Below the pieces are notes generated by a model, which was not told where the DNA came from, did no database searches, and saw only the letters and a list, made by a program, of their open reading frames with translations. From Paramoeba atlantica (taxonomy: Eukaryota > Protista > Discosea), in contig CDRNVI010000067.1 in the NCBI GenBank assembly GCA_977017575.1, positions 1 to 64,000 on the forward strand: DNA of 64,000 nucleotides, written 5' to 3'. Numbering within the stretch: position 1 is the first letter of the stretch; each line of letters opens with the position of its first letter. Shown here piece by piece: positions 5,094 through 64,000 of the stretch. The position numbers and the translations under genes were made by a program.

Positions 5094-5488
5094 AAATAGT
5101 AAATCATGAGGTAATGTACTTGGACTAAAACGGTGTTAAGAGAATGTAAGTCGATGAGCGTAAAAATCAGTTTGGGCGGTTTTCCTTTAGTATCTTTCGT
5201 GTCAGCTAAAATTTTCATGGTTACTGTATTTATTTTTATAAGCACCTAGTAAAAAGTTATCCCATTATTTCTTTTCCCAAAGACGATTTCATCTGATTCT
5301 TTAACATTTGAACTGCATTTCTTCAAAAATTTCATTTTTACACTATTATTACATGCTTTTTGTTCCTTTGTTTTTTGGGCTAGCTTCAGTGGCCTTCGCA
5401 CCGTCCCATCAAACTTCACTTTTTAGCTGTTACCTCTTTTATTGAATGCCGTCTTGCATTTCATTTTTGACACTTTTTTTCTTCCTTC

Positions 5489-6379: not shown

Positions 6380-6395
6380 AAGCACGTTTCACGAG

Positions 6396-7040: not shown

Positions 7041-7148
7041 GAATGTGTTTTTGCGAATAATAGTAGAGGGGCAAGTAAAGTTTAAGAAGATTATAGATAT
7101 ATACACCTTTTTCTTTGCCTTTTGTTTAGCACACTTACTATCACCCGA

Positions 7149-8297
7149 ATGTCCATAAGACCATCTCATGCCTCTTTTTCAAGGCTTCCGCCCAACTTCG
7201 TCTTTTTGAATAGGACTCGATCTCAATCCACCCTTACATCACCTACTCCTCATTTGTTAGGGGCATTGACTTCTGCCTCTCCTCACAATAAAATTCCCGT
7301 GACTCGTTCCGACGCTGGAGATTACGTGCGGCATTATTTCCGACCTGAACTGGCTATTCCGGGCCTGAAACCCTCTTTGAATATTGTAGACTTGGGGGCC
7401 ATTCACGGAGAGAACCTCCATGAGGCCTACACCTTTCAGGACTTTACTTTAGCCGAGTTAGAGGCGACGGGGGATAAGCTGCTTGGGTGGCGTGTCCAGG
7501 GAAACAGCGAGGCGACGCGCCGAAAACTTCACTACCGCGAGCTCTATTGTGGCCCATTGCTGCGCTCCATGACGCGAAACTACCACGAACCCACGGAATG
7601 CACAAAACAAGCCAATGAGACTAAATCAACGAATGAAACCACCGTTCCAGATGATTCCACCCCGATATTAAAAACAAGCGAAAACGAACACAAAAACACC
7701 GAAAAAACATCTGCAGAGCCCGCGGCTTCGAAATCACTCACTCCAACGCAAACACTCAAATGCTCTCTGCCCAACACAGCGGAGTGCCGCCCCTCTGTCT
7801 CTCGCCACGGCCTCCTGGACGCGGAGCTGCACGTCGCGTTCCGCATCTACGACCCCGTGATTCCCTCCTTGCTTGCGCCCGGGGAGATTAACGAGTACCT
7901 TGGGGTGATGTATCCCGTGCTGGAGCTCACCGCATGTCGGTACCCCCTGCGCCCCACCAACGTACCCGCCCATGTGGCGGATATGGCCGGCGCAGGGTTT
8001 GTGTTTTTCGGGGACCCAATCCCAAGCGAGAAGTGGGCAGGGCTCGAACTCAGCGAGCTCAAAGCTGTGCTGCTGCACAATAATATCCCTGTGGCGATTG
8101 GGAAGAGTTCCGCCGTCGTGGGTACGGTAATGAGTGCGATTAAATTTATCGCACGCCATTTGAAAAGTCGTCCACGGCCGCTCCAGGAGAACCAGGTGGT
8201 GTTGTGTGGCTCCATGGGGTGCACACAGGTGAAACCGGGGCACATCACGGCGCACTACGGCCCACTGGGGTGTGTAGAGGCGTTGGTGGATGAGTAA
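7149..8297 (+). CDS. MhpD/HpcG-like hydratase/decarboxylase (fumarylacetoacetate hydrolase superfamily), probable mitochondrial presequence
   Basis: GWRVQG, ELYCGPL, DAELHVAF, YPVLELTACR, VADMAGAG, GKSSAVVG, QVVLCGS follow the FAH/MhpD motif order. R/S-rich N-terminus. Confidence 0.7.
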   Translation: MSIRPSHASFSRLPPNFVFLNRTRSQSTLTSPTPHLLGALTSASPHNKIPVTRSDAGDYVRHYFRPELAIPGLKPSLNIVDLGAIHGENLHEAYTFQDFTLAELEATGDKLLGWRVQGNSEATRRKLHYRELYCGPLLRSMTRNYHEPTECTKQANETKSTNETTVPDDSTPILKTSENEHKNTEKTSAEPAASKSLTPTQTLKCSLPNTAECRPSVSRHGLLDAELHVAFRIYDPVIPSLLAPGEINEYLGVMYPVLELTACRYPLRPTNVPAHVADMAGAGFVFFGDPIPSEKWAGLELSELKAVLLHNNIPVAIGKSSAVVGTVMSAIKFIARHLKSRPRPLQENQVVLCGSMGCTQVKPGHITAHYGPLGCVEALVDE

Positions 8298-8436
8298 CAG
8301 TTTTTTAAACCACCATGGATTATGCCAGCTAGGCCAAGTACTTTAGCGACACATAAAAACATTTGAAACACCTTGGCTTTTTATTTACCCTTTTTCAACT
8401 TAGTGCTTGATTTTCTTGCTCCTCATTTTTATCCTA

Positions 8437-11022: not shown

Positions 11023-11687
11023 CGAAACGTTGAGGTTGATAAAAGGAGAGTTGTGGTGCGCACGTGTTCGGGTCTCAGAAAGAAAGGACGATGAAGCTGT
11101 TGAGGGTCCCGTCAAATTGAGTGTGAGTTCACTGGGGTCTTATGTTTGTGAAGGCGTAAAAAGTTATGTTGTAATTGTTTTTTTCTCGTCACATACCAGT
11201 GCGTTCATACTCACCAGTATCACCTTTGCCTCGAAGCCCCTTTACCTTGATGCGTGCCTGCTACAGATCTAGAGCAGGCTGTTTTTTACCACACTGATTT
11301 TTTTTTTGCAAAAGAGCAAGGGTTTTGTACCACCACCAGAGGAAAAAGCTTTGACACGTGTAGCTATCTGGGACATGCTCCGATACCTTTTATTGTACTT
11401 GATTTTTAGCAGCAGACCGCTTGAGTGAAGCCCTCACTGCATGAACCAGAGCAGGACCTGAATCTTAGGCAGTTAGCTATTTCCTCTCCTTCCTTAGCTA
11501 GTTACTCGTACTGTACAGTAGCTAGTCTACTGTAGTACAGTAGATAATCTACTGTGAGCGTTGAATACTGAAAAAATATAAAAGACTATTTTAAAGATAT
11601 TCTTTGTTTCAATTCATATTTTTTTTCTTTCAATTTTAGAAAATTTCTTTTTCGCATTTTTATCCCTTTTAGACTTTACTTTCTTGC

Positions 11688-12308
11688 ATGGTGTATTTTT
11701 ACACTTTAAAAACTGCCCCGGATCTTGTCTGCTATATGGGCCGAGATAAGTATGAAAACGAAGATCTGATTGAATACGGATTGGACGAGGACGTTTGGTT
11801 TCATGTTGATGATTACAGTAGTGCTCATGTCTACCTCCGATTAAAGGAGGAAGAATCATGGGAAAATATTTCTCCCGAAACATTGGAAGAATTAGGCCAG
11901 CTAACGAAACACAATTCAATTACAGGATCCAAACTTGCGTCTGTGAATATTATTTACACGCCGTGGAAGAATCTTCACAAGGGAAAGGATATGGAAATTG
12001 GTGCAATTGGATATCATAATCCGAAAGCCGTCAAAACGTTGCGCATTTCCAAGAACAACGATATTGTAAAACCTATAGAGAAAACAAAGCGAGAGAAGTC
12101 AGATTACAATTTGAAATCCTTGCGTGAGAAATATGATAAGAACAAAAGAGAAAAGGCACGTCTTATTCAAAAACAGCAAAAAGATGAAAAAGAACGTCAA
12201 ATCTCTGAGGCGAAAAAGGCAGCAGAGCTTCGAAATTATTCATCATTAATGAAAACAGTTGATCGGAGTGCTGACCAAACGCCAATCGATGAGGATGACT
12301 TTATGTAA
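11688..12308 (+). CDS. CCDC25: CCDC25 / NFACT-R (DUF814) protein
   Basis: YMGRDKYENEDLIEYG...DVWFHVDDYSSAHVYLRL...IIYTPWKNLHK; charged C-terminal coil. Confidence 0.92.
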   Translation: MVYFYTLKTAPDLVCYMGRDKYENEDLIEYGLDEDVWFHVDDYSSAHVYLRLKEEESWENISPETLEELGQLTKHNSITGSKLASVNIIYTPWKNLHKGKDMEIGAIGYHNPKAVKTLRISKNNDIVKPIEKTKREKSDYNLKSLREKYDKNKREKARLIQKQQKDEKERQISEAKKAAELRNYSSLMKTVDRSADQTPIDEDDFM

Positions 12309-13054
12309 TTCATTATTGAGAAATTTTGAATTAATTGAAGCCATCCCCACTTAAATACCTGAGGAAAACTATCGAAGCCGTGAAGAGATTCAACTGAAAG
12401 CTTAAAAAGTTGCACTGGTTCATGACACCACTATTTATTATGAAAGTGTTATTCCCGACGCAAAGCCTACTACATTTTATTAGTGTATGGTTTGCTGTAT
12501 TTATTTTTCTTTTGGAACCTGTTTTATCATTGGAGAGTATGCAGTAGGTCTGTGTAAGTCCGCGACGAGCTGTGGTACGTGGTAATCCGTGTAGATTCGT
12601 GAATGTTCGTGTAGAATTTTTCGGTATTTTTTAAGAGGGCTTAATGGCTCGGCCGCTAGGATGATTGCATGTAGGTAAAACAGACCGAATTAGTTAAAAC
12701 ACGTCACTCTGAATGAAAATTTAAATAACAGCTGAAAGAATAAACCCACATAGGCACTAATACTAATAATCCTTGTGATGGGAATAGTCGTTGGCTTTAG
12801 CACCACTCACTCTTTACCTTATTTGGTGCCACTTATCTTTACTTTTTCATTAAATCTCTTTTACCATCTTAAACCTCTTTTTAGCTTTATAACTTGAAAC
12901 ATCACGCACATTGCGAGAAGCGACGTTCTTTTTGCACTTTTTTAAAGATTCCATCTTACGGGAACCTTCTTCATCTTCGACTTCAATATGTTGTGGGCCA
13001 CGTGAACCAAACGTGGTTCATCATTATCTTCGGTGGGATTGAACGAATAATGTA

Positions 13055-14021
13055 CTCCCCCTGTCATTAATAATTTCTTTTTTAGGCTTTTCGTTAAATG
13101 CGGTGGTTGTTTTCAACTTAGAAGTCCCTCATGCTGCGCTCTTCGCGTTGAAAACTACCTCCGCGTTTAACGAAGAGCCCAAAAAAGAAATTTGGCCTGG
13201 AAAGGTGAAGAAAACGGAAAGATTATAGCCAAAAATAGCCGATTTTTGGGTAAAAATGGGGTGATTTTTGCGTATTTTTGCTCTCAGAGCACTAAATCTG
13301 ATATTTGCGTGTGCGAAATCACTCGTAGGCGTGAATGCAAGCCTACTGAACGTGTTGGGTAGAGAATGCGACTCCAACCACACCATTCTTCCAACACAAA
13401 AAGGCCTCTTGGGGTCCGAAAAATACTTTTTCACCTTTTTTAGTCAAAAATGGACCATTTTCGCGGGCATACCACGGCTCGAAGAAGAGATACCTTGCGA
13501 AAACAACTGGGCGGAAAGCTAGTATAGGTCCCAAACTCAAAATACAATAGGGGAAACGATTTTTGGAAAAATAATTTTTTTACCATCTTTTTCGCCAAGT
13601 TGAATTTTTTTTCAAAATTTTTTTTCCGAAAAAATCCGAACTTGGCGGACCCGTCCTGCGGCTACGAGGGGGGGTCACCCCGGGGTACGGGGGTGGAAAA
13701 TGCGCGCCAAGACCCCGGCTACCCTTTCTGCGGGTTTGTTTCGAAAAATCATTTTTACAAAAAAATTTCGTGCGGTATGCCCCCCCCCCCTAGACCCCCC
13801 ATTTTTTTCAATTTTGGACCACCGGAGCCCCCTTTTATATTTTTTTCTTCTATTATATTACTGTGTTCCTCTTTATATTTTCACTGTTTTTGTTCACCTT
13901 TTTTTCAATAATCGAGGGTAGAGCGGTAGTTTTACAACCACCGCAATGATAATGATAATCCTCAAGAATGATAATTTTTTGAGATTTTTATTATCATTAT
14001 CATTATTAATGGCAGGGGGAG
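13055..14021. mobile_element. TA-flanked TIR element (CTCCCCCTGTCATTAATAAT termini) enclosing a HINE-like copy
   Basis: ta|CTCCCCCTGTCATTAATAAT at 13053-13074 and ATTATTAATGGCAGGGGGAG|ta at 14002-14023 (19/20 inverted match). A solo right end lies at ~17890-17910. Confidence 0.7.
13075..13947 (+). mobile_element. Apparently complete ~870-bp non-autonomous Helentron/HINE-like element
   Basis: 5' long palindrome (13081-13180), internal C-run microsatellite, 3' hairpin gcggtagttttacaaccaccgc. Other copies at 53387-53897(-), 59221-59447, 41560-41755, 62480-63075 and 63215-64000. Confidence 0.65.
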
Positions 14022-14396
14022 TACTCCTCTTCTCATTAATTTATATAAACGCCATTCCTAATTTTTCAGAAAAAAATATAGATTTTCAAAAAATTATGTT
14101 TTTGAAGAAAAAAACAGGAAAAGCTAGGATAGAGGGGAGGACACCGCAGAAAAATTTGACCCTCACTTCCGACAAGGACCTTGGATCTCACGTTCTGCAA
14201 TAGCTTATCGCAGAAAAATAGCGTTTTTCCATCAGGCAAGATCATTAATCAGGACTTTTTGCCTAACCATTCTTATTAATTTCTATAAATATAAATATAA
14301 ATTTTCTTTTTTGTTACAATATATAAACCCCTGGCCACCAATAAGGCACCCCCCCCTTATTTTTTGCATGAGGGGGTATGGTAGGGTTAACATACC

Positions 14397-14960
14397 ATGT
14401 TTTCGTTCAAAATTTTGAGATCTGTACGTTCCCGCTGTTTTTTTGATACAAACGATAATCGAATGAAAATGTGGGTAAAAAAAGGAGAGACCCCTGCAAA
14501 GAGACTAAAGGTGCGCTGGGCGCCTAAGTGCCAGGTGTGGGGTGCTATAGGAATTAACTGGAGATGCTTAAAAATTTTATCCAGCAGGACCTCTATTACC
14601 CACGAAACATACATAGACACACTAAAACATGTTTATTTCCCCCGCAAAAGAATATTTCAACAAGATGGTGCCACCGCTCATACGGCCAAGGCCACCATAA
14701 ATTACCTGAACAAACGAAAAATTAATCTACTAAAAAATTGGCCCCCAATTTCTCCCGATCTTTCTCCCATTGAAAACATATGGTCAATGGTACAACAAGA
14801 CGTAAGTGAAAAGCTACCATCTACAGTTTCCGAACTGCAAAGGTGTATTCTAAACACATGGAGTTCTTTACCGACTGAAATGATAAATGATACCATCTTA
14901 AGTTTCGATCGTAGACTGAAGGCCTGCGTCGAACTAGGTGGCGAAAAGGTAAAAAAGTGA
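14397..14960 (+). pseudogene. Tc1-like transposase C-terminal half (DD35E)
   Basis: CQVWGAIG, FQQDGATAH, NWPPISPDLSPIENIW; 35 residues counted between D and E. N-terminus deleted. Confidence 0.9.
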
Positions 14961-15709
14961 TAAATACAGGGTCGTTCAGCATTTTTTGAGCAATTCTTAC
15001 AAGTGTATGTTTTGTTCAATTTTTTATATACAAATGTACCTCAATAATCATATGTACCTCAAAAGATAGGCGCGAGCCTCCTCTAGAAAGGAAAAATATG
15101 ATGCCTTGTCGCCAAGCGCGGTTCAGACACTAATATTTTTTTTGGTAATATTTGACGCCTTTCGTCCAGATGAGCCGCTAGAAAACGTCTTGTTTTTAAA
15201 ACTCTTCGAATCGTGAAAGAAAAGCTTGTCTTTACTCACACGTATTTGAATCATGCGTTCATATGTATTCGAAGCATCCGATAGAGTAAGAATTTGATAC
15301 TATCAAATGCAAAACGTGTTTTGTTGTAGAATTGCCAAATTGCGTTTTTTTCTTTACTTTCTTGGAACATGCCATTGCAACTGGACGAGGAGTCCAGTTA
15401 CTGTATTTCCCCTCGCTCTGATGCTAGCTCAATTTCAGATTTGAGCGTATCAACACCATCCTCACTCGGTGATGACCCGGATTGGACTTTGAGTGATTTC
15501 TCCGTAGATTCAAGCGATAACTCTCTTATTAGTGAAGATGAGTGGAGTGATGGGGAGGGCCTTGTAGCATATGGCCAATTAGCTGTAACGTCGAACGCGG
15601 TGAAGATGAAAGTTTCTTAGATTTTATCTCACGAATAAAAGGGGATGTTTCATCTCGCGCGAGCTCTATCCCCTACGAGAAAATCTCACCCCCAAAAAAT
15701 TATGATCTA

Positions 15710-17261
15710 GTGGTTGAAGAATTGATTGGCAATAGTCTTTCTTCTCAGCAACCAGAAGAAGAGGTTCTAAGAGCAGAACCTCCGGACGAGATCGAGCCGA
15801 GAACTTCAAATGTACAACCAAGTCACGACGAGGAAAAAATTCAAACAGAAGTAACGGCGGATGAGGTGCGAAGCAAGAGGAACGTCGAACGTACTCTACG
15901 AAGACGTATCGAAAGCTTACAACACAAACTGCGTTTGCGCACACGACAGTTACGAAATGCTGTAAATCGTAACTGCAAGCAAGAAACGCGGTATGATGAA
16001 ATATGTGAGAGGGTAAACGCAAGCATGAAAAACAGTGAGTTCACTTGCAAAGAGGCTGAGATTCGATGCTCTCTGTTAGAAAACGAACTGAAGATAGTAA
16101 AGGAGGAAAGAGCACTTCTTGAAGTACGATACAGGGAAGAGGAGACTGAAAAATTTCAAATAATTAAATCTTTGCAATTATTGCGCAGCCAACAGCACAT
16201 CCAGACATTTGAACAAAAGCAACAGGGAAAACGAGGCCGACCCATGAAAAAAAAAACAATGAACAGACGAACCGCAGTTCAAATATATAGAACTAGAACG
16301 CGGTTAACAGAAACAGATGTAATGGCTATAAAATTGTTTCACAGGAGCGGCGTTTACCGGCACGCTGACCTTTGTTACATGTTTGCTTTGCCCCGTTCGA
16401 CGTGCACTTATGTTCTGAAAAGTTCTAAGGCTGGAGAAAGAGGAAGAAAGAGGAAGAAAGAGGAAGAAAGAGGAAGAAAGAGGAAGAAAGAGGAAGAAAT
16501 TGTCTCTCTCCCAAAAAAAAATGGACGCAAGAGTCGCCTTTTGTCAATCAATGTTAAAAGAGAACGAGGCAACCGAAGGCATATTTTTTAAGCGATTAAT
16601 ATTTTCTGACGAATCCTGGATGGAAGCGGGGGACATGTCCAGAGGTGCTTGGCAAAGTCCGACTGACATTGTGTATAAGTCAAGGACGCATCATCCAACG
16701 AAAGTAATGATTTGGGGTGCTATTGCGGGCGACGGACACGTTTTTTACCACTGGTGCGATTTCACCAAGTTTTACAAGGATGAAGCTTCGCGTGAATTGC
16801 TACCTGGGGAAAAGCGGGAAGAATTTCCTCAGGAATTAAAACTCGGATCGTTATATTACCGCAAGTCGATATTGGAGCCCCATTTTTTGCCTTACGCAGC
16901 CACTCATGAAAACATTATTCTTATGGAAGACGGTGCTCCCGCTCATCGGGCCATACTTACAAAAAAGTGGTGAAAAGATCGAAAGGCGATGAACTTGTCA
17001 CGGTACGTGAGTACAACTGGAGAGTTAATGCTTCGCTGGCCGGCGGATTCCCCAGATCTTAATCCAATTGAGAACTTGTGGAACCAAACAAAGCAATTCA
17101 AGAACCGTAAATGCCCCATTTCTGCAGGTGAAATTAAGCGCGTATGTGAATCATATTTGGACTCCGTAGAAGCGAAGGAGTCGATAAAGAAGCTGCATGT
17201 CTCCTTCAAAAAAAGACTCGAGTTGTGCATATTATATAAAGGAAAGAAGATTCCTTACTAA
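15710..17261 (+). pseudogene. Second Tc1-like transposase (coiled-coil + HTH N-terminus, DD46E catalytic domain), broken by a frameshift and one in-frame TGA
   Basis: FSDESW, KVMIWGAI, MEDGAPAH, TKKW*KDR (TGA at 16971-16973, same frame continues), RWPADSPDLNPIENLW. HTH-like RLTETDVMAIKLFHRSG...LPRSTCTYVL lies upstream. Confidence 0.8.
16441..16500. repeat. 10-bp tandem repeat AGGAAGAAAG x6
   Basis: Directly visible; last unit ends in T. Confidence 0.95.
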
Positions 17262-46917: not shown

Positions 46918-47541
46918 CTACGATTTCAACCTCAGCTTCTGCGGAGATGGAACTACGAGGCGGAGGTCTCGCAACGTGGAAGAGGTGGAAGTTGTCAGTC
47001 TTTCGGTCTTTGATGATGCGACGTTGCAGAAGGTCATCTTTAAGGGATTAGACTTCACTTGCTTCCAGTGTTGCCGAAAGTTTATCCTTGACATCACCTT
47101 GAATTTGATGAACAAACTTTCGATCAACTTCAAGGTTTGCATCCCCCAAAGTCGATAAAAAGCTTTCCACCAAAGCTACTTGATCGTCGCGTAGTCTCTT
47201 TTTCTCGTTCGCACGCACACCTTCGTACATGCGCCACATGTTTCGAAGAAATTCTTGCAAGGAGTTGCGTTCTTCGGGGTGAAGAGGGTGGTTGAAGTAT
47301 GCGCATATTGCTTCCGCAGAGAGAGAGAGATGGCACTGGGCAGAAGTCGTTCCGAGTCCTGTGGAGCATTGCATAGAGGACAGTAGTTCGTTCCTATGAT
47401 TACCGAGACCCTTTGACATTGGATGCAAGGATCTTTTGCATCACTTTTAATGGTGCATGCACACATTACACACCGTATAGGTTCCCCCAAAGATACGTGG
47501 CGGTCCACCTTGCAGCGAGGACAATACATTTTTCCCATCAC
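46918..47541 (-). pseudogene. Cys-rich (4x CxxC) zinc-ribbon ORF with frameshift(s), upstream of the Harbinger-like transposase
   Basis: CPRC, CVMC, CIQC, CPLC. The frame appears to shift at the (GA)n run ~47320-47331 into a helical segment (NSLQEFLRNMWRMYEG...). Confidence 0.45.
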
Positions 47542-47689
47542 AATAAATTTGAATAGGTGGAGAGTTCGAATCTAGAAAATAATAATAATGATTATCATTT
47601 TGCATCACAAGGGAGCAACGTTTAAGAAATAGCAGTAACAATCCATATTTGATCAACTAAACTTATACTAAATGATCAACAAAGACCAG

Positions 47690-48520
47690 TATCAGTGCTA
47701 CACTTTGGCCCACCATGGCCCCTAGTGGCCCACCGTGACCCCGAGTGGACCCGGGTGGACCCGAAAAAGACGCCAAATTGCAGGGGGTCCACTACAATCC
47801 AGTGCCAACTTGTGCCAGCCAGTGCAAGCCACAACGGCCATTATTCTAGGGGACCCCACTCGCACCTTTATCTGGCATAAAAAGTGGCCACTTATATTGC
47901 ATACTAATCTGCACCTTTATATTGCATAATGCACCTTTACATATATATTAAGCTGCACTTTTATATTGGATAAATTCTGCACCTTTATCTGGCATAAAAG
48001 TTGGAAAAAAATCGAGCTCTTAAATTTTTTTCGAGCCCGTAGAAATTTTTCGACCCCTTAAAAAAATTCACCCCTTAAAAAGTATGATCATTTTTCGTTG
48101 GTTTTCGCGAAATTTGAGGTTGACTGGAAATTTTAGGTTTTTCACGTTGCCAAAAAATGGAAATAAATAAATTCACTTTTGCTCCCGGTGAGGCCCCGGA
48201 GTTGCAAGAGGGCACCCGGACATTTATAATGCATATTAAGCTGCACATTGCTAATGCATATAGCACATTTATAATGCATATAGCACATTTATAATATATA
48301 TCACAATAGTGAATTTCTTTGACACCTCAACTTAATTTTTTTTGCAGCATTCACCAGTTTATGTCGCAGACGGGTAAACAAGGTCTGGGTTTATTGGCCC
48401 GGCCGGCCCCTCCGTGCGTTCGACCTCTCATATTCCCCAAAACAACTACCACCTTCCCCCCATTTATCAGGGGTCGCTCACGCGACCCCCGTTAAATAGG
48501 GGGGGAGGTTGTCACTCAGA
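47690..48520. repeat. Composite repeat (ATGCAT/gcaccttt minisatellites, ctcccggtgaggccccggag motif, terminal hairpin)
   Basis: 48181-48210 matches 58006-58037 and 60070-60100(-). 48385-48515 is the inverted copy of 58050-58172. Confidence 0.65.
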
Positions 48521-49456
48521 TTCGTCCTGTACTACAATCTTGCTGAAGGTAATGTTTCAGTTTCATACGGGGCGAGCCGGCAGAGCATTTTCCTGTCGTA
48601 TGACGACCGTTATCAACGGCCATTACAGCGCATTCAACGCCGGTCGTACGCAGAGATTCGGCCGGCTATGTCTCTACTTCGTTGACCCGTCAGCGAGTGT
48701 GATTTGATCAACGCTAAGACCTGTTACATTTGCGATCTGCAAAACTGTAGAGGAAGGAGGAGGCGCAAGGCAAAAAGCAGAAGGCGGAGCCTTCTGCCTT
48801 TTTGCCGTAGCGACGACGACTTCCTCGCATAGGAATCTGTAAGGATCCCAACAACAACAAGGAGCCTAGGATCTGCTTTGGAACCGCGGAATTGGGGAGC
48901 TGTTAGGATTGGGTGAAAATTATAATTCCTGAAAATCTTTCATCGACTCTGAGACCCAGCTGCGGTTCCGCTCTTCGGTCAAAGGGCCCCGAGAATATGG
49001 TCTAGGAGTTCTTTAATGTGCGGTGATTGTCCGGCTTTAGTACGACTGGTTTACCTTCAGGAAACATGGTTATTTTAGCCGGGGAGGCCGGTCTTCGCGC
49101 CTTGTAAGGGAGAGGCGTGGCCGGTTTACTGGACCCAAAGTGGCATGAAGAACACTTCGTGTGTTTCATTTTGAATGGAGAAAAATGTTTATTGCAGACA
49201 GCACAAGGCTTTTTGAGTTGGAAGGCCTCAGCGGTAAGGAGGATTTCTTTTTAAAGTCTGGATCTGGAAGGCCAGTGTTCTCATGCTATGCTCCAGGAGA
49301 GCTATGGTCTATTTCTTATCACTGGGGCCACGTTTCTTGCTCTGTTGAGCACACTTTTCGCAGAAACGGTGATGGGGGAGATGGGGGACGAAGTATGTCT
49401 CACAATCTGAACATACTCATGTAGAGATCGTGAAAAACGTGTCATGATAAAAAAAT

Positions 49457-49489
49457 CAACAAGGTACAGAAACTGTATCTTTATCGTTA
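49457..49489 (-). other. Spliced-leader (mini-exon)-like sequence without following GT intron
   Basis: Minus strand reads TAACGATAAAGATACAGTTTCTGTACCTTGTTG: kinetoplastid SL core ACAGTTTCTGTAC, upstream TAACG and a 7-nt tail ending TTG. Followed by ATTTTTTTATCATG, not GT. Confidence 0.55.
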
Positions 49490-49627
49490 AAAAATATAGT
49501 TTTGAGGAAAAATGTTTAGGGTCATTTATGAAAATTAATGAGGGGGGGAGTATATAAAACGTTTAGAGACATTTTTTACTATACGGGTTGTTAATTGTGT
49601 AAACGTTTTGGCAGAAAGGATTGTACT

Positions 49628-52156
49628 ATGATGCCAGTGCACTCGAATTCGATGCCCCAGCCAGCCGAAAATCCACACGTACAATTTCCAATCGAAATTT
49701 TCTGCGAACACGTTGAACGCAGAATGCTATGGCAAAAAAACATCAAAAGAAATTTACCCGCACTGTGTCCTTCAGGTGACACCTCGGTGTCAGTTTCATT
49801 TCCTGCTGTCCTTAAAATAGCCTACCCAGTATTTACGGTTCAATGGATAAACTCTACCGTTTTACTGGTAGCGGGGGGTGGAGGCCGTTCATTTGGGATT
49901 CCCAATGCCGTGCAGTACATATTTTTGCATCCTAGCCGGACGCCACCAATCTCGAATGAACATCGACTTCCTACTGAAGTTGCCCCACAAACCGACCGAG
50001 TGGCAGGCACCAAGAAGGGAGTACCTACTGATGACTGTACTCTACAGGTTTCCACAGTTTCACTGTCGCGACACCAATCTGTGTGGGATTCACTAACCAC
50101 GCAAATACCAGACGAGAGACATGATTATGGTCTGGAACCAAATTCCACTCGTATACCTTGCCTCTCTTCTACGTTTCTTTCCGCACTCAGCCACCCAAAA
50201 GGTCTTTCTTTCCGAACGATGGAGTTAGCCGCTTCGTGTAGTCGACACACGAACAAGGAAGACGGTCAACGAAGCAGTGTAAGAAACCCTGTTTTCGACT
50301 CCCAGGAAATCAACGTTCTCGACCTCACCTCTACTTCTCTCATGCAGCCCAATAAAAAGTGCATTGCCTTGGTGTCTGTCCAACACGCGGACCCTTGCGG
50401 GCGTATGACAACGCTGGTTCGCTATGTCCTCTCCCAAGACGATGGCGGAATAAAGGTGATCGAGGTCAGCCTCGTGGCATCTCGCACGGAAAACACACAA
50501 TCGTCTACTTTGTCTTCCTCTGCCCGTATTTCATCTACGTCTTCTACTCTATCACACCTTCATGCGACATATCTCCCCTGTGAGAAGCGAAGTTGTCGAG
50601 CTCGACGCCATCACTTTCTTTCCAGTCCTAATCGCTGTTCATACGCCACAAAAGAAGCCACTACAGAGTCAAAAGAGGATCCAGAATCCAAAACCCCCCT
50701 TTCCCCGTCTCAACAGGAGTTGCGGAGAAATAGTCGGAGAGACCATGCTGCATCGAAAGACGATCCCAGGAGAGAATTGGACCGGAACACTATTGCGAAT
50801 ATTTACCAGGACGATGAACTTCCCACCGGGTTGCGTTCCGAGTCTCACACCTCTTACTGTTGCGGGTGTGAGGAAAGTCCATCGAATCATGATACCCCTT
50901 CGACACGCCTGGCACCTTCCCGTTCACTTCCCTACGTACTGGATATGAACACTTTCCTAGGAAGAGGTGCCGGCTTCGAGCAAAGGCGCAGCGAGAACCC
51001 AGACACGAATCTTCACGCTAAGTGCAGCTCTAGGACTTCGGCGAAAACCTTGTCAGAGTCTTCCCTTGGCGAGTCCAACATATCAGAGAGTAGAACATAC
51101 CCACGTAGCACATGCATTCAAACACTCCTGGCCGTCACTAGTTCTCGTGGAGGGGTGTTTCTGTACGTTCTGTGCCCTGCCTGCGCGGCCATGACCCTGC
51201 TGTGTAGTTACCACACCCTCCCCCCGGAACTCAGCTCTCCTCACGGTGTGTCCACTTCCCTTGTCCCTTCCTCCTGGTTAGCATCTCGAAAGCCAACCTC
51301 TTCCTCACCCGTGCGTTGGTCACACTGCCGATTTGATCCACAAAACGGAGAGACGCTTTACGTGGTGCTCAACCACACATCCACCGGGAGTGTGCTGCTG
51401 GTGTTGGGGCTCGAGCGTGCGCACACGACTTACTCGCCTTTGACAAAGCCACCCACGCCCCATTTCTGCGACACAGAGAACAGTTTTGAAAACCAACACA
51501 TCCGACTACGGTACGTCCGTAGCTCGTTTTTAAGCAAGGACAGTGTCACAGCATTGACCTTTTTTCCTGCGTTGCTGGAACAAAGCGACGCATTACCTTT
51601 GGCGTGTACGCCGTCATCTGTGTCACCTCTTCGCTCCAACGACACAGAACACAAATTCTTGACTTGTACTTCGTGTACACACGAGATGAGGTGGTCCCCA
51701 CCCCGGACTTTTACGTCAAAAAAGAAAACGACAACACAACCAACCCCTTATGGATTGCTTCTCGGCACCAGCGAAGGGACCGTTTTTCGCGTGTACCTCC
51801 CCTGGGGGGTCTGCCTGGGACCTCACGCCCGGCTCCATCACGCCCCCATCACGAGCCTATCCCTCTCTTGTGTGGAGCACGGCGACGGGGGTGAGAAGCC
51901 TTTTGTTCCGAGTCCCACAGCCCGGTGTACAACGACTCCACTGCTTGCCAGTGCGGATCTCACACGCGTTGTGCGACTGACACCGCTGAGTGCCACTGAG
52001 TCGTTTGCGACGCGTTGGGTGGAATACCTCACAAAAAGTCAGAGGGAGGCTTGTATGATGGTCCTGACCAGAACGACATGGGTGGTTGCCCTTCTCCTGT
52101 GGTGGGTACTGCTGCCACTAATTGGGACGTTCCTCGTATTACGACTGTATGGATAA
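49628..52156 (+). CDS. SEC12/PREB-like WD40 Sar1 GEF with large insertions and C-terminal TM
   Basis: YPVFTVQW...LLVAGGGGRSFGIPN (K-loop GGGG motif), WD-like blades (LLLGTSEGTV, LHHAPITSLSL, LASADL), C-terminal hydrophobic anchor. Confidence 0.65.
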   Translation: MMPVHSNSMPQPAENPHVQFPIEIFCEHVERRMLWQKNIKRNLPALCPSGDTSVSVSFPAVLKIAYPVFTVQWINSTVLLVAGGGGRSFGIPNAVQYIFLHPSRTPPISNEHRLPTEVAPQTDRVAGTKKGVPTDDCTLQVSTVSLSRHQSVWDSLTTQIPDERHDYGLEPNSTRIPCLSSTFLSALSHPKGLSFRTMELAASCSRHTNKEDGQRSSVRNPVFDSQEINVLDLTSTSLMQPNKKCIALVSVQHADPCGRMTTLVRYVLSQDDGGIKVIEVSLVASRTENTQSSTLSSSARISSTSSTLSHLHATYLPCEKRSCRARRHHFLSSPNRCSYATKEATTESKEDPESKTPLSPSQQELRRNSRRDHAASKDDPRRELDRNTIANIYQDDELPTGLRSESHTSYCCGCEESPSNHDTPSTRLAPSRSLPYVLDMNTFLGRGAGFEQRRSENPDTNLHAKCSSRTSAKTLSESSLGESNISESRTYPRSTCIQTLLAVTSSRGGVFLYVLCPACAAMTLLCSYHTLPPELSSPHGVSTSLVPSSWLASRKPTSSSPVRWSHCRFDPQNGETLYVVLNHTSTGSVLLVLGLERAHTTYSPLTKPPTPHFCDTENSFENQHIRLRYVRSSFLSKDSVTALTFFPALLEQSDALPLACTPSSVSPLRSNDTEHKFLTCTSCTHEMRWSPPRTFTSKKKTTTQPTPYGLLLGTSEGTVFRVYLPWGVCLGPHARLHHAPITSLSLSCVEHGDGGEKPFVPSPTARCTTTPLLASADLTRVVRLTPLSATESFATRWVEYLTKSQREACMMVLTRTTWVVALLLWWVLLPLIGTFLVLRLYG

Positions 52157-52421
52157 AGGGAAGAAAAAAATAATGTTGGTAAATTGTTGTTTAGTTAAAT
52201 ATTAGCTACTCAACTAGGTTTACGCAATTAACGAGAGTAAAAAGGAGGTGCTGTACTCATGTTGTTTATCTTGCTTGTCACGAAATATCGTCAAAAAGCG
52301 AATCACTTCGCCTTATTCATAGTAGGACAGCTACTAGTACTTTTGGTTCCAACTAAAATTCTTCTACTCTTACTAAAATTTCAGGTTTTCTAAGATTTCC
52401 TATACTGTTTTGGCGAAAAGG

Positions 52422-52997
52422 ATGGATATTTCTGTGATTTCAACTTCGCGTGCAGGTAAAGTCAGGGGCATGAAATTACCATTAGAGTACGACCTTGCCA
52501 AATTCATTAGTGAAATTGAAAATCCGTATCCCTCATGGAGTACTGCTACGCCTGCCTGTGAGTGGGATGGAGTGAAGTGCAACGATAAGGGTGATGTTAC
52601 TGAAATCAATTGGAGTTCTCGACAGTTACGTGGTGTGTTGCATTGGGAACATCTACCCCAATCACTTATTTTGTTGAACATTCATAACAACCAGCTCTGC
52701 GGCAACGTAGATTTTTCTGCGCTACCCCGGGGATTGCAGAGAATGTGGATTGGTGAAAATTTGTTTAGCGGAGAATTGCATTTTAAAGATCTTCCTCCCA
52801 CGGTTACTGTTTTGAATGCGTCGAGTTGTCGTTTCAGCGGTCATGTCGACTTTTTAAGCATTCAACATTCATCTCTTGCAAAAACCGCGTCAGGTTTCGA
52901 CCTACTGAATAACCCTGCTCTAAAGGGTACAGTCTCCAGAAACGTAATTCCTCAAGATGCTTATTGGGGGATTCCCGACTCATGGATTAAAGAATAA
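52422..52997 (+). CDS. Short LRR protein (GxxRGxxLPxEYxL family)
   Basis: AGKVRGMKLPLEYDLAKFI, CEWDGVKC cap, LHWEHLPQSL. Confidence 0.87.
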   Translation: MDISVISTSRAGKVRGMKLPLEYDLAKFISEIENPYPSWSTATPACEWDGVKCNDKGDVTEINWSSRQLRGVLHWEHLPQSLILLNIHNNQLCGNVDFSALPRGLQRMWIGENLFSGELHFKDLPPTVTVLNASSCRFSGHVDFLSIQHSSLAKTASGFDLLNNPALKGTVSRNVIPQDAYWGIPDSWIKE

Positions 52998-53386
52998 TCG
53001 CTTTGACGTTTTCACATTTGTTCAAGAGCCATTAGAGATAGCCATGAAAAATTAGATTCGGACTGTCAGCTAAACACTGTAAGCTTGCGAAAGTAATTTT
53101 CGCGCAATTGTACAACTGGGCTGAGGTGAAGTGTATTGTACAAGGGTAAAATGCGCATACATAATTTGCGGTAATTGTACAACTACAGTAAATGCCACTA
53201 TTCTGAGAGTCGCTAAAAATGAGAATTGGGCTGTCAACGTACAACTGGCTAAAATGAGAATGCACTTTGAAAAATGAGAATAATACAAACAAGTGTGTGT
53301 CAACGTTCACTTGTATGTCAACGTTCAATTGAATTCGACACTAAAAGCTCGGGGGGAATAAAGCTGTATAAAGCTGAATATTCATC

Positions 53387-53897
53387 GCCGCTCTACCCTC
53401 GATTATTGCGGTGGTTGTATAACTCCCGCTCTACCCTCGATTATTGAAAAAAAAGTGAACGAAAACAGTGAAAATATAAATAAGAACACAGTAATAATAG
53501 AAGAAAAATATATAAAAGGGGCTCCGGTGGTCCAAAAATTTTCAAAAAAATTCGGAATTTTCAAAAAAATAGCCGGGGTCCTGGCGCGTATTTTCCACCC
53601 CCCTACCCGGGGGTGACCCTCCCTGGTATGCGCAGGGCGGGTCCGTCAAGTTTAGATATTTTCGGAACTTTTTTGAAAAAATTTTCAACTTGACGAAAAA
53701 AATGGTAAAAAAATATTTTTCCAAAGTTGTTTCGCCTATTGTGTTTTTATAGTTTGGGACCTATTCTAGCTTTCTACGCCATTGGTTTTGCGAGGTGTCG
53801 CTTCTTGAAGCCGTGGTACGCCTCCCAATATGACCCATTTTTGACCAAAAAAAGCGAAAAAGTAATTTTCGGAACCCAAGGGGTCTTTTTGGGTCGG
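53387..53897 (-). mobile_element. 3' terminal ~510 bp of the HINE/Helitron family, directly downstream of the Helitron ORF
   Basis: Reverse complement of 13390-13947; partial duplication of the terminal motif at 53387-53404. Confidence 0.8.
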
Positions 53898-53899
53898 AA

Positions 53900-56800
53900 C
53901 GTAATCTCTTCGTATTGATTACTGCGAGCCAGTGGACGATCCTCTTTAAAATGAGCTCTGTCCACAGGTGCACTTGGCTCAGATTGAGCCGAAGTTGCAA
54001 GTCGTTCGTTTTGAATCATTTCAGCATAGCGCTTTCGCGCATTTATGACTGAAATATTGGACCTCGTCCTTGTCCTTGTCGATGCAAGATCAACATTTTC
54101 TTCAGAGGAGTTCTCAGTAGAACCTCCTAACGCGGCCGTTAAAGCTCGCGTTTGTAGTTCGCAGTATGCATTCTGCTGAACCAATCGCTCTTCATTGACC
54201 ACTGCAGTGTTCTGCTGTGCTTCAAGAGTATCTTGAAGATGAGGTTCAACCTCGCGCACTTCAAGCTCATTTTCGTACGCAATGTTCCGTGCTAATACTG
54301 CTTCTTCCAGAGTGCAAGCATCTTTGCGTCGATACAAATCTGCCGCGTTCTCTGTATTCTTCGAAGCATGTAAAAGCCGAAGAAAGTTGCACATTGTGTC
54401 ATACTTTCCAGGCGTATTTACTTTCGCTTCATTGAGAAGCTTTTCAAACCCTTCTGGGGTCATTTCATGGCTCGGTGAGCCTTTCGTCCATGGGGAAAAC
54501 AATGCCACCATGTGTTTCGCTACTCGAAGCTGGCTTCGAGCTTGTGTCCCAGGTTCTTTTGAAGAACTCAATATGGGAAAACCTGGTACAGCTGGCACAG
54601 TGTGCAAAGAGCAGGCAACTGTTGCTCAACAATATCTCCAGGCTCAAATTCCGGGAGGCCGTCAATGTCCTCAAAGGCGTATCTCCCATTAGCACGACGT
54701 CCGCGACGACGTCTTCGATTTGTCCCTGACTCAAAATCTTAATCACGATCGGGCTCTTCTTGAGCTAGCTCAGCTCTTTTCTTCTTTACGCTGACAATGC
54801 CTGCATAGGAATACAGGTCAAGGTCTTGAAGGTCTTCGCCCCTGTGCATGTAACGCACATGGAGTGGTGCAAGAACTGCACAATCATGTTCGGTGATCAT
54901 TAGAGCTCTACCATACCGTTGTCGAACTCTATATCAGAGTCTTGTGACGAATCATCGTCACTGATTTCTAGATCTCTGTGATCTGACTCACTTGAGATGT
55001 TTGCCAGGAACTTCATTACAGGTTCACATTGATCCATGTGAAGTACGGCTCATGTACTCGGAGGGTTGGCCGAGACAAAAGGCAGTTGCCATTTCGATTG
55101 AAGCTTCCGATGTGTCATATTCGACAATTCTCTTTCGATGTGTCATGTTCGACAATTTCTGTAAAAGTAAGCGTGCCATCGGAATGCCAGTTTGCACTCT
55201 GTGCTCTGAATTCAGACCCCTTCGAAGGTGGTCATTGGCTGCGCGAAGTGCTGGTACAATGTACACAGGTGGACCAATGTCCTTGCTCATATATTTTATG
55301 AGATATTGCATAATTTTTATGCCGGGGCCTTCGCTTCCAATGAAAACTACACATGTATTGCATCTTACGCAAGCAGTGAGTGTCTCATTGTACGGAACGA
55401 TGATGGATCCCCGTTTAGTGTCTTGTGTCGGGTCCTGGTTATTGCGCAGAAGCACAATCAGAGACCGTTCATCAAGTACTGACCAAATGGTATCATTTTT
55501 AATCGGCCGTGTTGGAGGCTTGAGCCAGAATTCCGGTTGTCCAGATTCATCCATCTGAACCTCAACCTCTCTAACTTCCGTTTCATTTTCATGAAGTACA
55601 GATTGTACGGATGCAATGCCATATCGGCATTTGTTCTTGTTTATATTTCCTTTCATTTTGAAACACATGGGTCTGTGACCAACGTGCTGCTGAACATCAA
55701 CAGCACATTTGGCCACATGTTCCCTTAAATAATCATCTTTTTCATCAGGAATGATATGTAGTCCTCCGCGATACATCGTCGGGCGTTGCAGGGCCGTAAA
55801 GCTCCTTACTGAACTTTGCGCCCACTCGGGCAGATCAGAGCGCATCGTCGTACCCAAAGACTTCGCGAGACCATCGTGCTCCTTCACAATGTGAATTCAT
55901 TCGAAGACGTAGTGTGGACTAAGATTCGTCCATAGCACACTATGAAAGTGTAGCGCACCTCTTTTCTGGCATTCTACGACACCAAAAAATGCTCGAGGTC
56001 GACCAAAGAGGCCTTTAAGAACGTCACGTTCCTTCTTTACCTCATCTACATTCGACATTCCATACAATTCGGTAAGAAGAGTACGGATTTGCCGTTCGAA
56101 AATGCTGGTGGATCTGACGGGATTCCCTTGCACAAGCTCAGATCGCTTGAGAAGGTTGGCCCGCATTTCCTGCATTTTTTCGCTCTCATCATTAGTGATG
56201 ATTCTTAGAGCTAGAACGTTATCGTTCATGTTTGGACTCACTGTGATCCAGTAAGTTGGCAGTCCGTATCGCCTGCATAAGGCGTAGATCTGACCTTGTG
56301 ATGCCTTTCGCTTTGCTGGCGAAAAGGGTATCGTTTTTGCGCATATTTGCACAAATGGCAGAAACTTTGTTTCCAGAAGTTTCGCCTCGGAACTGTTTGG
56401 GTTCCTTATAGCCTGTTGTACAATGTGATAGAAAGCATCAGCATTGCAAAAATTAACGAGGCTTCTGTGCATATCTTTGTTATACTTCAGATTTTGCACT
56501 ACCGCTGATGAGACTGCACGGCGCCGAAGCACATCGTAGCAGTAAAATATGAATCCAGCATTCTTTGCAAATCGGGAATCCGATTGCTCTAGAATTGTCT
56601 TGATTTCATATGGTTCAAACGTAGAACCCTTAAAAGGGTACTTTTGCATCAGAGTCGGAAATGCTCCGAGCAAGATGTTTCCATGTCGATATACTCATTG
56701 AGTAAACCTTCTTTTTGTTTCAGTTGCATCGCCACGGCGTGCGTAATTTGCGCACCCGCCGGCGCATTGCTTACAGGGCAGTGATCGGTTACAAAAGCTC

Positions 56801-57137
56801 GTGTGATCTCACCGCGAGGATCGCGATGTGACGTATCGGAAGCCACTGCTTGGGTGACCATACTGTTGATGGCGTTTTCACCCTCCTGGGAAACGGATCT
56901 ATCCCAAAGATGTGAGACAACGTCTCTACAATGTTGCTCGGTAACAACGTTGATTTTTCCTTCCTCTTTCAGTTGAGCATACACTTGGTTATGCTCACAG
57001 AGGAAGTCTACCCAGGTGTTCAGAGTCTCTGATTTCACCCCGAATATGCCACTCAGATGTGCAGAACATAGTCTTTGACTACGTTTTGTTCGCCGTTCGT
57101 TGGCTATCCAAACAATTTGGATGTGCTTAATCGCCCT
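53900..57137 (-). pseudogene. Degenerate Helitron Rep (HUH endonuclease) ORF; helicase absent
   Basis: WVDFLCEHNQVY and LLNEY..GAFPTL, VLRRRAV, PTYWITVSPN (motif 1), FFGVVECQKRGALHFHSVLW (motif 2), YLIKYMSK (motif 3), YMHRGEDLQDLDLY, MVALFSPW. Several frameshifts. Confidence 0.88.
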
Positions 57138-57760
57138 ATCTGGGGATTTTGGGGGAAAGTCCAAAACAACGACTTCGTTTTCTTTAAAGGTTCTAAAACT
57201 GCCATTGTGGCAAGGAGCATTATCCGTAGCAACCCGGGCCCCGCTATGACGCTTTAAGAAACTTAAAAAACCCCCTCTTTTTGTCATCGCGCATTTAAAA
57301 ACATCTGAAGTGATGGTAATTTTCCCATTACTGTCCCTGTTTGGAAAAACATGATAAAAAATTCCATAAATAAAGCTTATACCCATCCAAACGTTCACTC
57401 CATCCCCCCCAAACCACTTGTGCGAAGCTTTTAGAGGTGGTTTCGGGGGGTCACTTGCTCTGCAAATGTACGAGCGGCTTTCCTGTCCAAGCTGGCAAGT
57501 GAATTTTTTTTCGTCACACCAAATTATGTGACGAAGCTGTGCGACAGACCACTTCTGCATTTTCAATGCAAAGGTTAGTCGCTTGGCCTTATGAGATTCA
57601 GTTAAAAAAAGGCCTTTCGAAAAAGAACGTTGGATTATCCCTGCGTCCTTCAAAAAATATACTACAGTTGGCCTGCTGCAGGTGAAACCTCGTTTCCTGA
57701 CCTCTCGAAGTATAAAATTCCAGGAGGGACAACCGCGTGTGCTTGACGTGTTGGCCGTGT
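57138..57760 (-). pseudogene. Tc1-like transposase fragment (HTH to SPD), in frame with the Helitron ORF
   Basis: CSRPTVVYFLKDAG, HKAKRLTFA, IIWCDEKKF, VWMGIS, TDNAPCH, DFPPKSPD. Stops just before the LNPIE glutamate. Confidence 0.85.
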
Positions 57761-57769
57761 CAATAATCT

Positions 57770-58175
57770 TGTCCCACTGATAATGCATATTGTCCCACTG
57801 ATAATGCATAAAAACTCGCACCCTTATAACGCATAAAACTCGCACCCTTATAATGCATATTTTTTGCGAGCCCCTCAAAAAAAAAGTGACCGCCCCTCGA
57901 AAAAAAATCGACCCCATGAAAAAAAAGTGGAGGGGGGGAAATAAGTTAAAAAGAAAAAAAGTGGAGGGGAGAAACAAGTTAAAGAGCGCTAGTATTTCAT
58001 TCCTGCTCCCGGTGAGGCCCCGGAGTTGCGAGAGGCCTGCATATCCCACAACTACCACCTTCCCCCCCTATTTAGCCGGGGTCGCGCGAGCGACCCCTGA
58101 TAAATGGGGGGAAGGTGGTAGTTGTTTTGGGGAATATGAGAGGCCGAACGCACGGAGGGGCCGGCCGGGCCACTG
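57770..58175. repeat. Minisatellites plus ~35-bp-stem hairpin repeat
   Basis: cccactgataatgcat x2, aaaactcgcacccttata x2; hairpin caactaccaccttccccc...ggggggaaggtggtagttg at 58049-58125. Confidence 0.75.
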
Positions 58176-59220: not shown

Positions 59221-59447
59221 TGGGCCCCCCTGGACCCCCCCCATGGACCCCCCATTTTTTTCAATTTTTTTTTCAGTTTTGGTCCACCGGAGCCCCCTTT
59301 TATATTTTTTTCTTCTATTATATTACTCTGTTCCTCTTTTTATTTTCACTGTTTTTGTTCACTTTTTTTTCAATAATCGAGTGTAGAGCGGTAGTTTTAC
59401 AACCACCGCAATCGAGTGTAGAGCGGTAGTTTTACAACCACCGCAAT
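59221..59447 (+). mobile_element. HINE-like 3' end with tandemly duplicated terminal hairpin
   Basis: atcgagtgtagagcggtagttttacaaccaccgcaat present twice in tandem (~59377-59447). Confidence 0.8.
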
Positions 59448-61408: not shown

Positions 61409-61491
61409 TGACAAGAGAGGGGTTCGAACCCTCGCCCACAGGGTGGAAGAGATCTTGAGTCTCCCGCCTTAGACCACTCGGCCATCTTGCC
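61409..61491 (-). tRNA. tRNA-Leu(CAA)
   Basis: GGCAAGA/TCTTGTC acceptor stem, GGAGA-CT CAA GA-TCTCT anticodon arm, long variable arm, GGTTCGAACC T-loop. Confidence 0.95.
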
Positions 61492-61583
61492 TGACTGCAG
61501 TATGTTCGAATGAGATGCGTACCCGGGAGAGATACGTAGAGATGTAACTGGGTAAAACAAACGTACTGCGCACCCGGTTCAGG

Positions 61584-61655
61584 GCCACGTTAGCACAGTG
61601 GCAGTGCACCAGTCTCGTAAACTGGGGGTCGCGAGTTCGATTCTCGCACGTGGCT
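61584..61655 (+). tRNA. tRNA-Thr(CGT)
   Basis: GCCACGT/ACGTGGC acceptor stem, CCAGT-CT CGT AA-ACTGG, GTTCGATTC, T-run terminator. Confidence 0.95.
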
Positions 61656-61678
61656 TTTTTAGACCGTGCGAGCGAAAA

Positions 61679-61749
61679 TGCGTTGGCCGGGAATCGAACC
61701 CGGGTCAATACCTTGGGAGGGTACCATGTTGCCACTGCACCACCAACGC
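61679..61749 (-). tRNA. tRNA-Gly(CCC)
   Basis: GCGTTGG/CCAACGC acceptor stem, GTACC-CT CCC AA-GGTAT, GGTTCGATTCC. Confidence 0.95.
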
Positions 61750-61835
61750 TTCCCTGGAGAGTATGACACGTTGCTGTGGGATGGAAATTTTACGTAACTT
61801 CTTACGTTAGCAAGGCTGCACCAGACACCTCCTAG

Positions 61836-61907
61836 GCCTGTTTAGCACAGTGGTAGTGCGTCGCTCTTGTAAAGCGAAGGTCACGAGTTCAATCCTCGTA
61901 GTAGGCT
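61836..61907 (+). tRNA. tRNA-Thr(TGT)
   Basis: GCCTGTT/AGTAGGC acceptor stem (two G-U pairs), TCGCT-CT TGT AA-AGCGA, GTTCAATCC, T-run. Confidence 0.92.
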
Positions 61908-63075: not shown

Positions 63076-63214
63076 GCCCCTTTTAACTAACGACACACAT
63101 TTTTATCATGCAGACGGGTAAACAAGGTCATCTCTCTGCTAGGGGTTGGGCATGGTGGAATTGTTGGGCTTCGCAAATTGCTTCCCACTAACGACACGGC
63201 GCCCGCACATTGAT

Positions 63215-64000
63215 AAAATTTCTTTTTTAGGCTCTTCGTTAAACGCGGTGGTTGCTTTCAACTTAGAAGTCACTCGTGCTGCGCGCTTCGCGTTGAAAAC
63301 TACCGCCGCGTTTAACGAAGAGCCTAAAAAAGAAAATTTAGCCGGGAAAACGGAAAGATTATAGCCAAAAATAGCCGAATTTCGGGTACAAATGGGGTCA
63401 TTTTCGCATATTTTTGCTCTCAGAGCACTAAATCCGACATTTGCGCGTGGGAAATCACTCGCAGGCATGAATGAAAGCCTACCGAACGTATTGGGTAGAG
63501 AATGCGACTCCAACCATACCATTCTTTCGACACAAAAATGCCCCTTTAGGTCCGAAAAATACTTTTTCACCTTTTTTAGTCAAAAATGGGTCATTTTGAG
63601 GGGCGCACCACAGTTCGAAGAAGTGATACCTTGCGAAAACAACTGCGTAGAAAGCTAGTGTAGGTCCCAAACTATCAAAATACAATAGGGGAAACGATTT
63701 TGGAAAAATATTTTTTTTGTCATTTTTTTCGCCAAGTTGAAATTTTTTTCAAAAAATTTTTTCCGAAAAATTCCGAACTTGGCGGACCCGTCCTGCGGAT
63801 ACGCGGGGGGGTCAACCCCGGGTAGGGGGGTGGAAAATGCGCGCCAAGACCCCGGCTACCCTTTCTGCGGTTTTTTTTCGAAAACTAATTTTTTCGAAAA
63901 AATTTGCTCGACCATGCCCCCCCCCCCCTGGACCCCCCCCCTGGACCCCCCCCCTGGACCCCCCCCATGGACCCCCCCCATGGACCCCCCATTTTTTTCA
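63215..64000 (+). mobile_element. HINE-like element running off the window end
   Basis: Colinear with 13075-13810: 5' palindrome 63215-63338, expanded (C)nTGGA/(C)nATGGA microsatellite at 63915-63990. Confidence 0.8.

Follow-up and report, generated by a model that had tools for sequence, protein, structure and literature searches.

A decayed Helitron Rep fragment and the inverted 5' part of a short non-autonomous relative in a contig of Paramoeba atlantica

The window analysed here is the first 64,000 nucleotides of contig CDRNVI010000067.1 (C67) in the Paramoeba atlantica assembly GCA_977017575.1. On its minus strand, positions 53900-57134 hold a decayed internal fragment of an autonomous Helitron of 12.86 kb. 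In a DNA search of the same assembly, homology to the full-length copies of this element spans exactly 57134 to 53900, minus strand, at 94-95% identity to the copies on contigs C43, C41, C52, C109, C34 and C82. The remnant is 3.2 kb long and corresponds to positions 6061-9282 of the full-length element, which we call the master, and to about amino acids 1430-2504 of a 2975-aa frame that is open on C43. In brief, it contains the C-terminal half of DUF6570, the entire Rep domain and the linker, and the helicase is absent.

The coding capacity of the remnant is divided over three minus-strand ORF pieces, 55897-56673, 55024-55887 and 53774-54607. The first of these matches the Pfam family Helitron_like_N (PF14214) with an E value of 4.1e-24 (86.3 bits), and immediately upstream of this match lies a weak one to DUF6570 (21.9 bits, under the cut-off of 24.3 bits). 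Rep motif 1, YWITVSPN, is encoded at 56230-56253, the HUH motif, LHFHSVLW, at 55930-55953 and the two-tyrosine motif, QYLIKYMSKD, at 55279-55308, all on the minus strand; their counterparts in the C43 frame are found at aa 1725, 1826 and 2041, respectively. Compared with the open C43 copy, the remnant carries 170 substitutions in 3314 aligned positions (5%) and at least seven frameshifting indels, located at 56680, 55814, 55777, 55044, 55020, 54905 and 54614. It breaks off 43 nt short of the point where PIF1 starts in the masters, and no PIF1 match was found anywhere on C67. The original prediction, a frameshifted minus-strand Rep ORF with all three motifs and without the PIF1 helicase, is borne out in both respects. 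The remnant is a dead internal fragment. Judged from its sequence, the region from 53.4 to 57.1 kb is transposon wreckage that holds no functional unit, and the remnant itself is predicted to be incapable of Helitron activity. An Rfam scan of the window gave four tRNAs only, and no structured RNA within the 53387-57137 feature.

Positions 53408-53899, directly adjoining the remnant, correspond to a short non-autonomous copy over its 5' ~560 nt. This piece is on the plus strand and runs opposite to the Rep remnant; it starts with GCGGTGGTTG preceded by TT and has a degraded mini-hairpin, and its 3' hairpin is truncated off. In front of it, at 53388-53407 (plus strand), lies the remainder of a "stutter", a 38-nt stretch in which the 5' terminus is partially duplicated; in comparison with a second contig, C100, this stretch has lost its first half together with 160 bp of flank. 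Position 53387, originally predicted as the start of the element, is in fact a deletion scar of 177 bp relative to C100.

Upstream, the remnant is bounded by a 635-bp dispersed repeat with a Tc3-type HTH, at 57138-57772, which is unrelated to the Helitron. A TIR search on this repeat gave nothing convincing, and the master sequence does not resume directly beyond it. A further minus-strand piece at 59225-59444 consists of the first 189 bp, counted from the 5' end, of either a master or a non-autonomous copy, together with a 35-nt stutter, and has 5' ends at 59409 and 59444. The part from 59225 to 59412 is 97.4% identical to master positions 1-189 and shares its strand with the Rep remnant, and this 5' terminus may be a leftover of the same dead master. 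The fragment is missing from the collinear position in C100, which differs by 5.1 kb upstream of the remnant. Since other repeats bound position 57134 and C100 shows this 5.1-kb difference, a minimum of one additional rearrangement has to be assumed on this side.

A six-frame search of the 45.7-Mb assembly gave 29 places with Helitron_like_N. The original prediction had proposed that an intact Rep-helicase copy bounded by the same termini be looked for genome-wide, and such a copy was found on C43, with further copies on C41 and C52. On C43, positions 152882-161806 form one uninterrupted frame of 2975 aa, with DUF6570 at aa 1360-1485, Helitron_like_N at aa 1611-1831 and PIF1 at aa 2519-2712 (E 8.5e-25); no Pfam family was matched by the first ~1350 aa. 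A domain search for these three families had also been suggested for the reconstructed ORF in the window; Helitron_like_N is strong there, but DUF6570 stays below its cut-off and PIF1 is lacking, whereas the C43 frame has all three. The corresponding frames are split in C41 (2257 and 574 aa) and C52 (1614 and 1228 aa). The nearest full-length public protein, P0001, is 32% identical.

The full-length element occupies about 12.86 kb, at C43:151112-163973. The alignment of C43 with C41 extends from C43-local position 3098 to 15974; the last 10,007 bp are 99.76% identical and the flanks are unrelated. The right boundary is common to C43, C41, C52 and C109, and the alignments of C34 and C82 stop no more than ~210 nt short of it. 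Along the coding strand, the master begins after TT with GCGGTGGTTGTAAAACTACCGC, a mini-hairpin with a 9-bp stem (-8 kcal/mol), and ends with a hairpin of ~110 nt (-38.9 kcal/mol, z -9.6) followed by TAAAA. The 5' GCGGTGGTTG is repeated in inverted orientation 20 nt from the 3' end, which gives a 10-nt exact asymmetric terminal inverted repeat (ATIR). The first 1.67 kb of the master consists of two units that resemble the short non-autonomous copies and have truncated hairpins.

The short non-autonomous repeat, or passenger, is ~875 bp long. Our reference full-length copy is at 13072-13946 of the window, minus strand (the repeat interval extends to 13950), the 5' end being at 13946 and the terminal hairpin of the 3' end at about 13072-13192. 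The palindrome of ~120 nt folds with -38.8 kcal/mol (z -8.7), and the opposite end is a mini-hairpin of 9 bp. The termini of the intact masters are not unrelated to those of the repeat: between the reference copy and the C43 master the identity is 97.9% over the 5' 146 bp and 90% over the terminal 190 bp, and the masters on C43, C41 and C52 all open with the 146-bp 5' end of the passenger and close with its terminal hairpin. Because it has the same two termini as the master, we consider the ~875-bp repeat to be a non-autonomous derivative. It should be noted that the polarity originally assigned to the repeat, with a 5' palindrome and a 3' hairpin, has to be reversed. The mini-hairpin end is upstream of the ORF and the palindrome end downstream in six of six near-full-length copies (C43, C41, C52, C109, C34 and C82), and since the coding strand ends in the large hairpin in these copies, the supposed 5' palindrome is actually the 3' end. 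The original prediction of a ~870-bp hairpin-ended repeat with at least eight copies was right in that the repeat is real and has nine related intervals in the window, but only two of these (13072-13950 and 63214-63990) are near full length. Non-autonomous copies also form head-to-tail tandem arrays.

At the insertion sites, TT stands before every 5' end seen (33/33), while the 3' tails are ragged and stop at varying points in the outer arm of the hairpin. In a comparison for target-site duplications, the flank pairs have no shared repeat of constant length or offset; the longest shared word has a mean of 7.5 nt, compared with 6.6 nt when flanks are mismatched. In a single copy there is a 12-nt direct repeat, offset by 15 nt, for which we have no explanation. 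No empty site was recovered for the passenger at 13072-13950, the flanks of which match only C67 and C100, both filled, all other matches being paralogous repeats that end before the site. The same was the case for the C43 master, where each flank belongs to a different repeat family and the two are nowhere contiguous. In a BLAST search with the joined flanks of eight copies, the joins were spanned only by tandem-array artefacts among the sequences searched.

Several features of the family are those of Helitrons, namely the Rep HUH motif with two tyrosines (in the remnant in the window and in the open C43 frame), a PIF1 helicase C-terminal to Rep (in C43) and termini that are common to autonomous and non-autonomous copies. 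By homology, the RepHel protein would nick the 5' end, unwind in the 5' to 3' direction and terminate at the 3' hairpin, and short copies that have both of these ends would be mobilised in trans. Canonical Helitron1 elements start with 5'-TC and end with CTRR-3', have a small hairpin located 10-12 nt before the 3' terminus and insert between A and T. The present family is like them in the fusion of Rep (HUH, two tyrosines) with PIF1 and in that the strand carrying the ORF has the hairpin at its end, but its termini are TT followed by GCGG... and ...GAGCCTAAAA(AAGAAA) rather than TC and CTRR, and an ATIR is present.

Helitron2 elements, in contrast, have an asymmetric terminal inverted repeat and hairpins at both termini (PMC5148889). 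Based on this terminal structure, an ATIR with hairpins at both ends, we assign the family to the Helitron2 type. It shares with the Helitron2 elements FoHeli1 and FoHeli2 of Fusarium oxysporum (PMC5148889) one Rep-helicase protein that lacks an endonuclease, the ATIR (here the inverted copy 20 nt from the 3' end) and the terminal hairpins, insertion sites flanked by T, and non-autonomous copies with shared ends. It differs from FoHeli1 and FoHeli2 in that the ~110-nt 3' hairpin is very large, reaches the terminus and has a ragged tail; in its length of 12.86 kb and its frame of 2975 aa, of which the first ~1350 are without a Pfam match; in the two hairpin-truncated, passenger-like units that make up its first 1.67 kb; and in a host that has a kinetoplastid-type spliced leader. 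The many short, non-coding, hairpin-ended derivatives, their head-to-tail tandem arrays and the insertion beside T are also found in Helentrons and their HINE/DINE-1 derivatives (PMC4067079). Unlike in Helentrons (PMC4067079), the master frame is without an apurinic-endonuclease domain; Exo_endo_phos (PF03372) gave no match in the 2975-aa C43 frame at E<=0.01. A distant public relative, P0003, does carry an Exo_endo_phos domain.

The two halves of the locus meet at an illegitimate junction at 53897-53900, where position ~558 of the non-autonomous copy is fused to position 9282 of the master in antisense. The junction is blunt, with a microhomology of at most 1 nt. When a 401-bp probe spanning it was compared with the assembly, the left half (53700-53897) matched the 3' regions of masters on the sense strand, e.g. 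C43:163535-163732 (+), and the right half matched the antisense strand, C43:160190-160393 (-). With one half in sense and the other in antisense, the passenger piece is inverted relative to Rep, and on the Rep strand the truncated Rep is followed by the 5' half of the element in reverse complement. The original prediction, in which Rep was joined in the correct orientation to the 3' 510 bp of the repeat, cannot be upheld, as 53408-53899 is the 5' mini-hairpin half, on the plus strand and inverted to Rep. It amounted to an autonomous Helitron that had been deleted internally and had kept its own 3' terminus, the Rep ORF running straight into the 3' end of the family. Such an origin would agree with the repeat homology starting exactly where the Rep homology stops, and with the ORF at 53774-54607, which crosses the junction. 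We nevertheless find it highly improbable, for in the six near-full-length copies the coding strand starts at the mini-hairpin and finishes in the ~110-nt hairpin, and the stretch 53408-53899 is without a large hairpin and bears a 5' terminus on the opposite strand.

Among the scored matches in the assembly, the junction is present only in C67 and C100. C100 is collinear with positions 46953-57772 of the window at ~99% identity, including ~6.4 kb of left host flank with an LRR gene. Contig pairs with identical matches, of which there are many in this assembly, look like haplotigs, and we regard C100 as the same locus, duplicated or allelic. Helitrons are known to capture flanking DNA through terminator bypass (background in PMC5148889), and a passenger 5' end that lacked its terminator could in the same way have read into antisense Rep DNA and transposed as a composite of the gene-capture type. 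The second copy of the junction, on C100, would at first sight agree with such a mobile chimera, but this is hardly credible at all given the ~6.4 kb of left host flank, LRR gene included, that C100 shares with C67; moreover, no correctly oriented 3' hairpin downstream closes the composite, and the scored matches include none in which unrelated sequence flanks the junction. As C100 has its host flanks in common with C67, we rejected the possibility that the composite had transposed there independently. As the junction is limited to C67 and the flank-sharing C100, it arose once and has not been mobilised. The locus is not, as had originally been predicted, a parent with an end of its own.

The two halves of the locus have diverged to different degrees. 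The passenger piece is 82-93% identical to its relatives and the Rep piece 95% identical to the masters; when the matching parts are compared with the C43 master alone, the figures are 83% for the plus-strand passenger piece and 95% for the Rep piece. This unequal divergence indicates different ages and fits two separate insertions, although the order of events is unproven. We suggest that the wreckage is very probably a pseudogenised internal fragment of a Helitron2-type element, fused tail to tail, via a single deletion, with a passenger of which the 5' ~560 nt remain. A passenger copy and a master would have landed tail to tail, with their 3' ends facing each other. The facing 3' parts would then form a long quasi-palindrome with homologous arms of ~620 bp, for which instability is expected, and one deletion of ~4 kb, with its ends at position ~558 of the passenger and position 9282 of the master, would have taken out both 3' hairpins. 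A layout resembling this precursor exists on C41, where a full passenger at 228622-229509 on the plus strand and the 3' hairpin of a minus-strand master, ending at 229597, face each other at a distance of 88 bp. No undeleted allele of the junction locus was seen. The junction is most simply explained by such a deletion.

The junction links sense to antisense of positions that are 3.3 kb apart in the master, and an inversion within one element, or a fold-back strand switch during rolling-circle replication or repair, could likewise have led from the master-equivalent position ~12621 in sense to 9282 in antisense. The 5'-terminus fragment at 59225-59444, upstream on the Rep strand, would be in keeping with a single element of this kind. 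However, the reciprocal junction expected of an inversion is absent, the plus-strand piece combines a passenger-type 5' end with a 3' region and is 83% identical to C43 as against 95% for the Rep piece, the junction is without inverted microhomology, and the event is unique, so that no recurrence backs a mechanism. We consider this explanation unlikely and rate it below the deletion because of the lack of a reciprocal junction, the unequal divergence and the unique event. More doubtful still is the specific proposal that the rolling-circle replisome switched strands between the large 3' region and the Rep-helicase linker, or that fold-back synthesis primed by a hairpin joined them, and that the junction is the trace left behind. 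If it were true, the giant-hairpin Helitrons of this genome would be a place to study template jumping.

As to the host, CAGTTTCTGTACCTTGTTG has one copy in the window, at 49457-49475, and 781 copies in the genome compared with 0 for the reversed control. The 14 kinetoplastid-type spliced-leader consensus sequences given in PMC3795323 all have its first 12 nt as an invariant core, and "kinetoplastid-like" is a fair label for the genome. A parent/derivative pair of a rolling-circle system in such a genome was part of the original prediction; the shared termini in C43, C41 and C52 and the spliced leader speak for it, but the junction studied here does not serve as evidence. From the sequence data, we conclude that the parent-derivative system is real and of a known kind, the Helitron2 type, in a lineage where it is unexpected. 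Published surveys describe kinetoplastids as lacking Helitrons. The open 2975-aa RepHel frame, the near-identical masters at different sites and the passengers, beside a kinetoplastid-type spliced leader, point to a wider host range of Helitrons. This point rests on the other loci and not on 53387-57137, which contributes the corrected polarity of the family and an example of element decay. In a survey of 57 trypanosomatid genomes class II elements were absent, and only Merlin, from Bodo and Perkinsela, is cited there (PMC12278014). Helitron-like ORFs are mentioned in the diplonemid Diplonema papillatum (PMC10161547).

The autonomous Helitron2-type element (the master, approximately 12.86 kb) on contig C43 opens with two passenger-like units, that is, units resembling the approximately 875-bp non-autonomous copies that share its termini. 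These units make up its initial 1.67 kb (C43:151112-152783, L030:3113-4784), and in each of them the terminal hairpin is missing its outer half. On contigs C41 and C52, additional complete passengers adjoin the 5' end of the master in head-to-tail orientation. Together, these arrangements suggest that the long master was built by terminator loss and read-through.

The N-terminal part of the 2975-aa frame of the C43 master (aa 1-1350, L046:883-4930) contains internal tandem repeats of approximately 267 bp. These N-terminal approximately 1350 aa matched no Pfam family, whereas P0001, the closest public relative at 32% identity, has a ubiquitin-hydrolase domain in their place.

On contig C41, a near-intact master and a complete passenger also lie tail-to-tail, with 88 bp separating the passenger from the master's 3' hairpin (C41:228622-229597, L031:3622-4597). 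The passenger and the 3' hairpin side of the master form a quasi-palindrome with arms of approximately 620 bp.

At least five independent copies carry a 35-38-nt partial duplicate of the 5' terminus, here called a stutter, immediately before the real 5' end. Stutters are found in the window, at 59410-59444 and 53388-53407, as well as on C109, on C34/C82 and on C100, a contig approximately 99% collinear with part of the window. A passenger on C109 (C109:31934-32880, L034:3934-4880) has a 12-nt exact direct repeat, AATTGCCTTTAA, on both sides, with one unit 15 nt ahead of the 5' end and the other immediately past the 3' tail. This repeat may reflect chance or an atypical integration.

Many contig pairs gave identical match scores (C2/C12, C39/C40, C10/C58, C34/C82, C62/C50 and C67/C100). 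For many regions, both haplotypes appear to be present in the assembly, and copy counts are thus inflated.

The window also contains a 635-bp dispersed repeat (57138-57772) encoding a Tc3-type HTH (E 5.6e-8). Its copies occur at 97-99%, with a second set at 85-86%, and their exact boundaries are identical; a search of the repeat for terminal inverted repeats found no convincing ones. Within the repeat-rich zone, four tRNA genes are clustered at 61409-61907, with their strands alternating. The spliced-leader core CAGTTTCTGTACCTTGTTG, located at 49457-49475, occurs 781 times genome-wide on both strands, apparently scattered rather than arrayed among the places listed. This number is far above expectation for SL RNA genes alone.
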